64,000 bases of DNA from IMG/VR virus record IMGVR_UViG_3300032516_000001, positions 1-64,000 of that record. One strand, written 5' to 3'. Numbering within the stretch: the first letter of the stretch is position 1; each line of letters begins with the position of its first letter. Position numbers and translations under genes: made by a program. This document shows positions 10,626-11,435 of this stretch, piece after piece. The notes under the pieces are model-generated. The model saw only the letters and a list, made by a program, of their open reading frames with translations. It did no database searches and was not told the origin of the DNA.

Positions 10626-10722
10626 GGTAGATATGAGACCGTTCTTCTAAATATTAAGATCCAGATCGCCTCCGGTCTCCTTCGTTTCCGGTTTCAACCC
10701 CGAACGAATGAAGGAGAAAGTC
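10626..10722 (+). promoter_or_regulatory. Leader with uORF MRPFF-TAA and in-frame RSPP motif
   Basis: SD GAGGT, ATG 10633, TAA 10648-10650, then ILRSRSPPV.. in frame with the 10723 gene; GAGACCG/CGGTCTC can pair. Confidence 0.55.
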
Positions 10723-11094
10723 ATGAAAGAGGCGATTCTGAAGCTAAAGAACGAAGTCAAGCGATTCACCGCTGAGGGCCGTGCCCTCGGTGGAAAAATT
10801 CGACAGTCCAAAGGACTGGACCGGTATCACCTATGGAACGAGAAACGTTCCCTGGGAGTTGATGCCAGGTGCACCCTTTTGGCATATGCATGCCTTAGGG
10901 GGCGGCTATACACTCAGATCGAGGCTAAGAACCATGAGGGTAATGAGCCGAGCGCCACATATGTTCACGATATTCTTTCACAGGTTCTGGATGATACAAG
11001 GAAAGCCGAGTGGACACCTGAACGGGTGAGAGCCTGGCTCAAAAGAGAAATGCCTCCTGCTGTTCAGGAAACGGCCTCGGAGGTAGCAGCATGA
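10723..11094 (+). CDS. Conserved phage protein (LAY..LRG..Y..IE motif)
   Basis: SD AAGGAG before ATG 10723; ATGA overlap with the Pth2-like gene. Confidence 0.75.
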   Translation: MKEAILKLKNEVKRFTAEGRALGGKIRQSKGLDRYHLWNEKRSLGVDARCTLLAYACLRGRLYTQIEAKNHEGNEPSATYVHDILSQVLDDTRKAEWTPERVRAWLKREMPPAVQETASEVAA

Positions 11095-11435
11095 CACACA
11101 TCACCAAGAGGCTCGTAAAAGTATGTATAATCACCAGATCGAATTTGACCGATGCAGATCAGGCTGTACAGGCATGTCACGTAGCGATGCAGTTTATGAT
11201 GGATTATCCAGAATCGGCCAGATCATGGCATGCGCAATCCAATACCCTAGTCTTACTTACGGTCGAAAACGAACAGGGTCTCCAGCGTATTATTGATCGA
11301 GCGTTTGATCTCAATGTTCGAACGGCTGCCTTTCGTGAACCAGACCTTAATAACGCTCTTACGGCCATTGCTCTTGAGCCTAGCGACAAAAATCAACGGA
11401 TTTGTAAGAACCTCCCACTTGCCCTTGGTGGCTGA
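11091..11435 (+). CDS. Peptidyl-tRNA hydrolase type II (Pth2)-like protein
   Basis: IITRSNL..AVQACH..TLVLL..FREPDLNNALTAIAL. Confidence 0.8.
   Translation: MTHITKRLVKVCIITRSNLTDADQAVQACHVAMQFMMDYPESARSWHAQSNTLVLLTVENEQGLQRIIDRAFDLNVRTAAFREPDLNNALTAIALEPSDKNQRICKNLPLALGG

Follow-up and report, generated by a model that had tools for sequence, protein, structure and literature searches.

Leaders that encode arrest peptides are known to monitor protein export and drugs. Here we describe a short leader that may use an arrest peptide to monitor a tRNA; it lies in the window, i.e. the first 64 kb (64,000 nucleotides) of the 241,648-bp viral contig IMGVR_UViG_3300032516_000001, and consists of a mini upstream open reading frame (uORF) that encodes MRPFF and ends with TAA, a putative arrest motif RSPP that follows in the same frame, and a hairpin that is predicted to hide the Shine-Dalgarno sequence (SD) of a gene for a 123-aa protein, which is itself followed by a gene of the PTH2 family. 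The closest described systems are the RAPP-type arrest peptides (ApdA, ApdP and ApcA, and SecM with RAGP) that are encoded upstream of sec/yidC genes: they have the same core R-A/G/S-P-P and the same output logic, in which a parked ribosome opens an SD-hiding structure (PMC10951233, PMC7897499, PMC12992588). Nevertheless, these peptides are tens to hundreds of residues long, contain signal or membrane segments, arrest constitutively and are released by pulling force, whereas the leader, with a predicted chain of ~13 residues and no targeting signal, lacks this monitoring-substrate design (an N-terminal signal or membrane segment, and release by force). The regulated step differs as well, in that RAPP-type peptides regulate the leaving of the motif and the leader would regulate the reaching of it, the motif being placed behind a stop codon or in another frame.

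Other known systems share separate parts of this design. Translation-attenuation leaders (ermCL, cat, cmlA) likewise combine a very short open reading frame (ORF) with an internal stall and an alternative fold that frees the next SD (textbook knowledge), but their stall needs a tunnel-bound drug, whereas here it would need a specific tRNA that decodes a stop codon or a four-base codon. The +1 frameshift at CUU UGA C of prfB (RF2) likewise sets termination against alternative decoding at a stop, and those relatives of the leader that have RxPP in the +1 frame (the +1 class, see below) would also shift at UGA. However, prfB senses release factor, its P-site slippage is helped by an internal SD and the shift takes place inside the regulated gene itself; the P-site codons of the +1 leaders (ACC, ACG, TGG, AAC) cannot re-pair in +1, the shift there matches an enlarged anticodon loop, and the readout would be arrest in a separate leader. 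Expression is likewise tied to the state of one tRNA in T-box riboswitches and in the attenuators of amino-acid operons, yet the T-box binds uncharged tRNA directly via RNA contacts and the classical attenuators respond when a charged tRNA runs short at sense codons, whereas the present leader would respond to a non-standard tRNA that is there and decodes. The bar minigenes of phage lambda are mini-ORFs of a few codons that are linked to host Pth and are toxic by peptidyl-tRNA drop-off in Pth-deficient hosts; to our knowledge, they involve no downstream arrest motif, hairpin or suppressor tRNA. Finally, read-through ribosomes on mammalian AMD1 likewise stall downstream with a regulatory effect, but that system is eukaryotic, resides at the 3' end of the main ORF, depends on near-cognate read-through and represses via ribosome queuing (PMC13025110).

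On comparative grounds, namely peptide-level conservation, frame rules, codon-anticodon matching and a covarying hairpin, the leader probably serves to sense, at the level of translation and by means of an arrest peptide, the suppressor tRNA that the phage itself encodes. Transcription would begin just 5' of the mini-uORF, and the ribosome would make MRPFF and normally terminate at the UAA (the test codon), after which the anti-SD arm would keep the SD paired and the gene pair would be poorly translated. Were the tRNA(UUA) that is encoded some distance downstream (coordinates in Table 1) to decode the UAA, the ribosome would proceed for six more codons and, on reaching RxP/P, presumably arrest there. 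Because a parked ribosome covers ~15 nt downstream, it would melt the outer helix along with most of the anti-SD arm and free the SD and start codon, 37 nt away, for repeated initiation on the 123-aa gene (i.e. the presumed sign of regulation is ON when stalled), with the coupled PTH2-like gene being translated along in triplet-class loci. The output would thereby report functional suppressor activity with amplification, i.e. a tRNA that is made, processed, charged and outcompetes release factors. The predicted chain at the stall is M-R-P-F-F-X-I-L-R-S-R-S-P, 13 residues and too short to exit the tunnel. Stalling has been documented for RAPP, RGPP and RSPP (PMC12992588, PMC10951233), a minimal RxPP suffices (PMC10951233, its discussion), and the solved stalled state of RAPP peptides has the P site on the first Pro codon (PMC10951233). 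Among RAPP-like arrest peptides, a core R-S/D-P-P counts as a permissive form of R-A/G-P-P.

The leader set comprises 37 distinct leaders 5' of homologues of the 123-aa gene. Sixteen of these form the TAA class (the window, L002-L004, L006, L008-L010, L013-L015, L019-L021, L025 and L040), and were taken from the contigs of 12 homologues (50-64% identity) and from metagenome or viral loci at 41-48% identity. For the wider family, a profile search yielded 208 proteins and three subfamily alignments brought 20 more viral loci, and tblastn with distant family members led to the cultured Stenotrophomonas phages DLP_5, DLP_3 and Summit and to phage DSS3_MAL1. Searched at the DNA level, the GenBank phage collection gave no match, tblastn with the window protein gave none either, and a scan of the genome-contig collection found nothing.

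The motif R-[S/A/G]-P-P is present 58-86 nt 5' of the main start in 31 of the 37 leaders, in the 0-frame after the stop in 20 and in the +1 frame in 11, and stop plus RxPP are kept down to ~25-30% protein identity of the regulated gene. Within the TAA class the agreement is complete: all 16 uORFs end with TAA and all 16 have the motif in frame 1-4 codons later, the uORF following the pattern M, 1-3 variable codons, Phe, Phe/Leu/Ser, TAA with lengths that differ by whole codons. As a background, R[SAG]PP occurs six times in the six frames of the window (4.7e-5 per codon position), from which ~0.01 is expected per leader; the other sites in the window (8734, 38797, 39741 on the minus strand) stand in unrelated contexts. 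The codons of the motif vary synonymously, with Arg in the 31 motifs encoded by AGA (11), CGC (9), CGT (4), CGA (3), CGG (2) and AGG (2), the x position by ten codons (Ser as TCG, AGC and AGT) and Pro by CCT, CCC, CCG and CCA. This synonymous turnover (six Arg and four Pro codons) indicates that selection acts on the peptide and, together with the frame rules, leads us to infer that RxPP is translated. The frame rules themselves are strict, in that the distance from stop to Arg is 3, 6, 9, 12 or 15 nt in 20/20 in-frame leaders (12 clusters) and 1 mod 3 in 11/11 +1 leaders (11 clusters), where the clusters, 23 in total across the two classes, were formed at 80% leader identity.

Three observations on the uORFs stand apart from these counts. 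A Phe two residues before the test codon is retained across the family (M..F-F/L-TAA; M-R-F-T-TGAA or -TAGA; 10642-10647 in the window) and may tune termination versus suppression. At L045:5950-6482 a family ORF without a start of its own is fused in frame behind the uORF MQNT-TAG, with a tRNA(CUA) ~400 nt downstream, an arrangement that may represent a simpler suppression gating or a TAG-recoded phage. Finally, in L050 (DLP_5, NC_042082.1, 49873-50342) the annotated start of gp070 falls inside the apparent leader region; the conserved family domain starts ~20 codons past that start, and 8 nt separate the gene from the tRNA-Sup-CTA behind it.

The identity of the stop codon follows the anticodon of the tRNA nearby. 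The tRNA(UUA) of the window scores 64 bits with Rfam and is folded by ARAGORN into a canonical cloverleaf with the 7-nt loop cuUUAaa; since its anticodon is complementary to the stop codon UAA, it is a predicted ochre suppressor. A tRNA(UUA) was found within a few kb in 6/6 other TAA-class loci that have any suppressor tRNA found, so that TAA leaders go with tRNA(UUA) in the window, L002, L003, L006 (two copies), L020, L025 and L040. Likewise, TAG leaders go with tRNA(CUA) in L032, L033, L042, L043, L045, DLP_5 (annotated tRNA-Sup-CTA) and DSS3_MAL1, and the TGA leader of L041 goes with tRNA(UCA). ARAGORN called 105 tRNAs over all fetched loci, 22 of them with a stop anticodon or an odd loop and none discordant with the adjacent leader. 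L041 (TGAA) and L043 (TAGA) serve as internal controls, as both have RxPP in frame and a 7-nt-loop tRNA, holding UCA and CUA, respectively. L043 contains two amber-type tRNAs, at 7167-7237 (7-nt loop cuCUAaa) and at 7693-7767 (8-nt loop gUUCUAAu), the former being found only by Rfam and missed by ARAGORN. The locus was considered as an exception on account of its 8-nt amber tRNA beside an in-frame leader, which the second, 7-nt-loop CUA tRNA resolved. No recoding of TAA was seen in the window (64 of the 242 kb), where ORFs of at least 100 aa reach 91% coverage under the standard code and TAA terminates 31 of the 85 long ORFs; reading TAA as sense gave no more gain than the TAG and TGA controls, and there was no excess of TAA-interrupted ORFs. 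As a separate observation, genes for transfer-messenger RNA lie within a few kb of the tRNA-leader cassette in two phage contigs (L049:1919-2304 and L043:3267-3617; Rfam RF00023, 110 and 88 bits).

The +1 class extends this correspondence to the size of the anticodon loop. Its leaders have RxPP behind TGAA (L026, L029, L031, L046-49) or behind TAGA/TAGG (L022, L023, L037, L038), with a 0-frame stop before or inside the motif, and they adjoin tRNAs with loops that hold UUCA or UCUA where the neighbouring tRNA is readable. An 8-nt loop is given by both ARAGORN and the Rfam alignment for L023 (UCUA) and L026 (UUCA), by ARAGORN for L031, and by the best stem for L029 and L046; the tRNAs of L047-49 can equally be given a 7-nt Glu-like reading (UUC then A), and that of L022 is ambiguous, with UCUA probable. 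Judged from their loops, the tRNAs of L023, L026, L031, L029 and L046 are candidates for natural four-base decoding, to which the corresponding +1 position of RxPP lends indirect support. Two further tRNAs, L037:5720-5796 and L038:4154-4232, have the 8-nt loops gGUUAUAc and gUUUAAGu; tentatively, these would match AUAA and UUAA, which stand one codon upstream of the 0-frame TAG, and a four-base reading there would likewise bring RGPP in frame. In L034, a sequence that resembles a tRNA, with the loop CUUUCAAU, is not called by ARAGORN. The genes that follow in the +1 class show no relationship among themselves.

The part of the leader between RxPP and the gene is predicted to fold back on the SD. 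The minimum free energy (MFE) fold of 10630-10740 has -34.9 kcal/mol (z -3.06). The window and its closest relatives share the outer helix in their MFE folds; it is less clear in clades with the coding sequence GAGGCAATC, and the covariation evidence covers the inner helix only. For that inner anti-SD:SD helix, hand-defined with 11 bp and followed through per-sequence folds in a trimmed alignment of 12 leaders, compensatory changes occur at 6 of the 11 pairs, 88% of the cells are paired versus 40-61% in slid partner columns, and the covariation score of 0.28 (0.18 in shuffles) is reached by none of 500 shuffles. RNAalifold on a MAFFT alignment of 16 leaders had returned almost no structure, because indels misalign the helix, and was replaced by the per-sequence folds. 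In all but three of the 31 motif leaders (L026, L043 and L047), the anti-SD has its 5' end no more than 4 nt before or 7 nt past the end of the second Pro codon. A ribosome was then modelled by masking, the P site being set on the first Pro codon. For the ribosome-binding site (RBS, positions -15 to -5) of the window, the unpaired probability rose from 0.09 in the free leader to 0.63 with the ribosome parked on Pro-Pro; the mean over the leaders went from 0.26 in the native state to 0.54 with a parked ribosome, and was 0.46 with the upstream part shuffled.

At the other end of the leader, TTGAC occupies the -35 position in 16/16 TAA-class leaders and in L041, and 6-10 nt separate the -10 box from the uORF ATG in the TAA class; because of this short distance the uORF is probably leaderless or nearly so. 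This bears on the initial annotation, which had taken GAGGT as the SD of the uORF: the pentamer is present (10624-28), but it is not conserved and sits between the -10 box and the ATG, although tRNA-adjacent relatives do have GGAG before the uORF. A pairing of GAGACCG (10635-41) with CGGTCTC (10673-79), suggested in the same place, concerns exact complements indeed, yet the helix is absent from the MFE fold and has no counterpart in L002, L008, L010 and L015. The core of that annotation held: MRPFF-TAA followed by in-frame RSPP is found at 10633-10674, the gene at 10723 is coupled to the Pth2-like gene (TGA 11092-94 overlaps ATG 11091-93; Pfam PF01981), and the alignment of homologous leaders that it had proposed as a check returned stop and R-[SAG]-P-P in 31/37 (20 in-frame, 11 +1). 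A terminator-like match at 10663-78 was dropped, as it is without a T tract and not kept in relatives. The Rfam scan of the window gave the tRNA as sole match at gathering score, and found no T-box or other described RNA family in the leader.

Several points weigh against a sensor of the suppressor tRNA. Six of the 37 leaders are without R-[SAG]-P-P, having instead IPP-stop (L032), KSPP-stop (L034), DPP (L035), KPP-stop (DLP_5), RPPP-stop (DSS3_MAL1) or the fusion of L045; L043 also has an amber-type tRNA with an 8-nt loop, and the loop size is ambiguous in L047-49, L022 and L033. The predicted RBS is not clearly hidden in L026, L029, L037 and L048, the window shows no genes that need TAA read-through, and the chain at the stall would be very short. 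Lastly, the arrest at RAPP and RGPP is robust across varied N-terminal contexts and EF-P resistant, whereas RSPP, the motif of the window, is partly permissive and under-represented in proteomes (PMC12992588). In the contexts tested so far, RSPP is weaker than RGPP/RAPP.

Four other explanations were considered. The tRNA-dependent stall might occur as described and have another outcome, by repressing the gene or triggering mRNA cleavage, or through a negative feedback in which the 123-aa or PTH2-like protein lowers suppressor activity, e.g. by tRNA deacylation. In favour of this, the downstream gene is a member of the superfamily of peptidyl/aminoacyl-tRNA hydrolases, a strong suppressor generally comes at a cost to the cell, and RBS access changes only modestly in several leaders under the masking model. 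Such an outcome nevertheless seems unlikely to us, as a ribosome stalled 37 nt 5' of the SD would leave initiation sterically free, and the stall site reaches into the anti-SD arm or adjoins it in nearly all leaders, a geometry that is that of known ON-switch leaders (secM-secA, ermC); a feedback at the protein level would moreover be compatible with the sensor, and no replacement for it. The initial annotation had named release-factor shortage beside the suppressor tRNA as a possible signal. UAA is read by both RF1 and RF2, and any read-through of it, whether by shortage or inhibition of release factor or by a near-cognate tRNA, would deliver a ribosome to RSPP. That the leader senses such a general termination failure rather than the phage tRNA is, however, very improbable: the stop tracks the anticodon of the neighbouring phage tRNA across TAA, TAG and TGA, 11 leaders require a +1 shift at TGAA/TAGA that release-factor shortage alone does not give, and the 0-frame stops in the +1 leaders would end simple read-through. 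The phage tRNA is thus the most likely signal, and the alternative of a release-factor shortage is not supported.

Two explanations remain. The purpose of read-through might be a form of the 123-aa protein with an N-terminal extension, with uORF, spacer and gene in one frame. Such a frame, noted in the initial annotation, is indeed open from uORF to main ATG in the window, and also in L002, L008 and L015, and L045 has the family ORF joined directly to uORF-TAG; but in close relatives the frame relation between uORF and main ATG can be 0, 1 or 2 and stops interrupt many of the read-through frames, so that an N-terminal extension is not a conserved outcome, and RxPP arrest would oppose the passage of the ribosome. 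We regard this possibility as highly improbable. Hardly more credible, if at all, is that the element acts as RNA only, the uORF simply terminating, CCUCC being kept as anti-SD and RxPP being an untranslated by-product, although CCUCC does complement GGAGG and the Pro-Pro codons themselves are the anti-SD in L019, L020, L025 and L040. L021, L026, L029 and L046-49 retain Pro-Pro with CCC, CCA or CCG, which breaks CCUCC; the Arg two codons upstream is kept via six codons, a matter on which an anti-SD role is silent; and the spacing obeys frame rules that match the tRNA type, where an anti-SD would fix one of three frames at best. The view that only ribosomes that read through UAA reach RxPP, stall and remodel the leader, as first proposed for the window, is supported by the conservation, by the covariation of stop and anticodon and by the frame rule of the +1 class, as far as comparison of sequences can do so.

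If the sensor is real, the leader monitors decoding itself, the gene being ON only when the phage suppressor tRNA succeeds at the stop codon, and it offers a testable handle on why standard-code phages carry suppressor tRNAs. The reason for the coupling we can only presume: the circuit may license a suppression helper or limit a costly tRNA. A conserved protein family is identified whose expression would be tied to suppression, and the enlarged-loop tRNAs, each paired with a built-in +1 reporter, would constitute independent genomic evidence for natural four-base decoding. The parts (test codon, RxPP, hairpin) are orthogonal and could be used to measure suppressor activity in cells. Taken further, phages might carry a modular cassette of a non-standard tRNA, a self-test leader and a small helical protein, in which the test site of the biosensor has co-evolved with the anticodon into ochre, amber, opal and true four-base versions (UGAA, UAGA, perhaps AUAA and UUAA); many environmental phages would then use quadruplet decoding, and the LLAYACLRG protein (see below) would be a new factor that controls or depends on suppressor tRNA action. 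To this wider proposal we would give even chances. The full-text literature, for which coverage was incomplete, yielded no description of a leader of such design, of a suppressor-tRNA sensor or of phage four-base-anticodon tRNAs paired with such leaders. The idea is testable because cultured relatives exist (the Stenotrophomonas phages and DSS3_MAL1 named above).

The 123-aa protein, for which 13 close homologues were counted, is characterized by the motif LLAYACLRG and had no match in Pfam, PHROGs or NCBIfam. Its main start at 10723 (MKEAI) is conserved, and an ATG at 10708 is not. AlphaFold2 predicts a long helical hairpin with small helices (predicted local distance difference test, pLDDT, 88.8), and fold searches with this model returned generic helical-hairpin matches only and no informative neighbour; a weak likeness to the N-terminal arm of seryl-tRNA synthetase (TM 0.53) was treated as uninformative. 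Nearly all family members (P0001-P0120) terminate in Ala-Ala, which in the clade of the window (11080-11094) is encoded by GCAGCATGA, a sequence that also contains the ATG of the next gene; this may be a coupling signal or a degradation tag.

The PTH2-family gene matches Pfam PF01981 with E 2e-7 (31.6 bits, cut-off 23), and a profile of ten homologues matches the solved Pth2 structures 1rzw, 1wn2 and 2zv3, archaeal Pth2 (E 3e-8 for 1rzw to 5e-7), as well as human Bit1. Equivalence to bona fide Pth2 was not found, the score with NCBIfam NF003314 being 26.9 bits versus an equivalog cut-off of 126. In the alignment to 1rzw and 1wn2, P-G-D/Q (D-A-D-Q in the window) takes the place of the G-K of the Pth2 motif, and the stretch D-A-G-L is matched by an invariant E-P-D-L; which residues of the Pth2 motif are catalytic is our assumption. 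These matches suggest a divergent member of the Pth2 superfamily that is probably translationally coupled via the ATGA overlap; its AlphaFold2 model is mediocre (pLDDT 66). The PTH2-like gene stands 3' of the family gene only in triplet-class loci; what accompanies the leader throughout is the 123-aa gene and not the Pth2-like gene. L003 and L004 have an RNA ligase gene (PF09414) 3' of the PTH2-like gene.

Table 1. Coordinates of the leader, its neighbours and the tRNAs discussed (positions in the window unless a locus is given).
Feature	Position	Strand	Remarks
82-aa coiled-coil ORF	10343-10591		upstream neighbour of the leader
Sigma-70-like promoter, TTGACG-17-TATATT	10595-10623	+	10/12 matches; TG precedes the -10 box
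Mini-uORF MRPFF, ATG AGA CCG TTC TTC TAA	10633-10650	+	ATG 10633-35; TAA 10648-50 is the test codon
Read-through segment ILRS (ATA TTA AGA TCC), then RSPP	10651-10674	+	same frame past TAA
RSPP, putative arrest motif, AGA TCG CCT CCG	10663-10674	+	
SD-hiding hairpin (predicted), UCUCCUUCGUUU with GAAUGAAGGAGA	10676-87 with 10706-17	+	SD AAGGAG 10711-16
Small apical stem of the SD hairpin	10689-91 with 10700-02	+	
Outer helix (predicted), 5' arm CAGAUCGCCUCC	10662-73 with 10729-40	+	5' arm has the RSPP codons within, 3' arm is main-gene codons 3-6; encloses the start codon
Regulated 123-aa gene	10723-11094	+	stop TGA 11092-94
PTH2-family gene	11091-11435	+	start ATG 11091-93; ATGA overlap with the 123-aa gene
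Phage tRNA, anticodon UUA (predicted ochre suppressor)	15604-15679	+	same strand as the leader; presumed leader input
8-nt-loop tRNAs directly 5' of +1 leaders	L023:269-342; L026:5781-5858; L031:5596-5668; L029:5690-5764; L046:5559-5631		

Three minor observations concern the surroundings of the leader and the window at large. A conserved stretch rich in CACAGC and TAGC lies at 10200-10262 and also just 5' of the -35 boxes in L010 and L015; the 82-aa ORF separates it from the leader in the window, whereas it abuts the promoter in L010 and L015. Between the operon and the tRNA, the ORF at 12557-13186 weakly matches a PHROG of phosphoribosyl transferases (phrog_32468, E 5e-6). The region around ~39650-39830 on the minus strand appears to be markedly higher in GC than the leader region.

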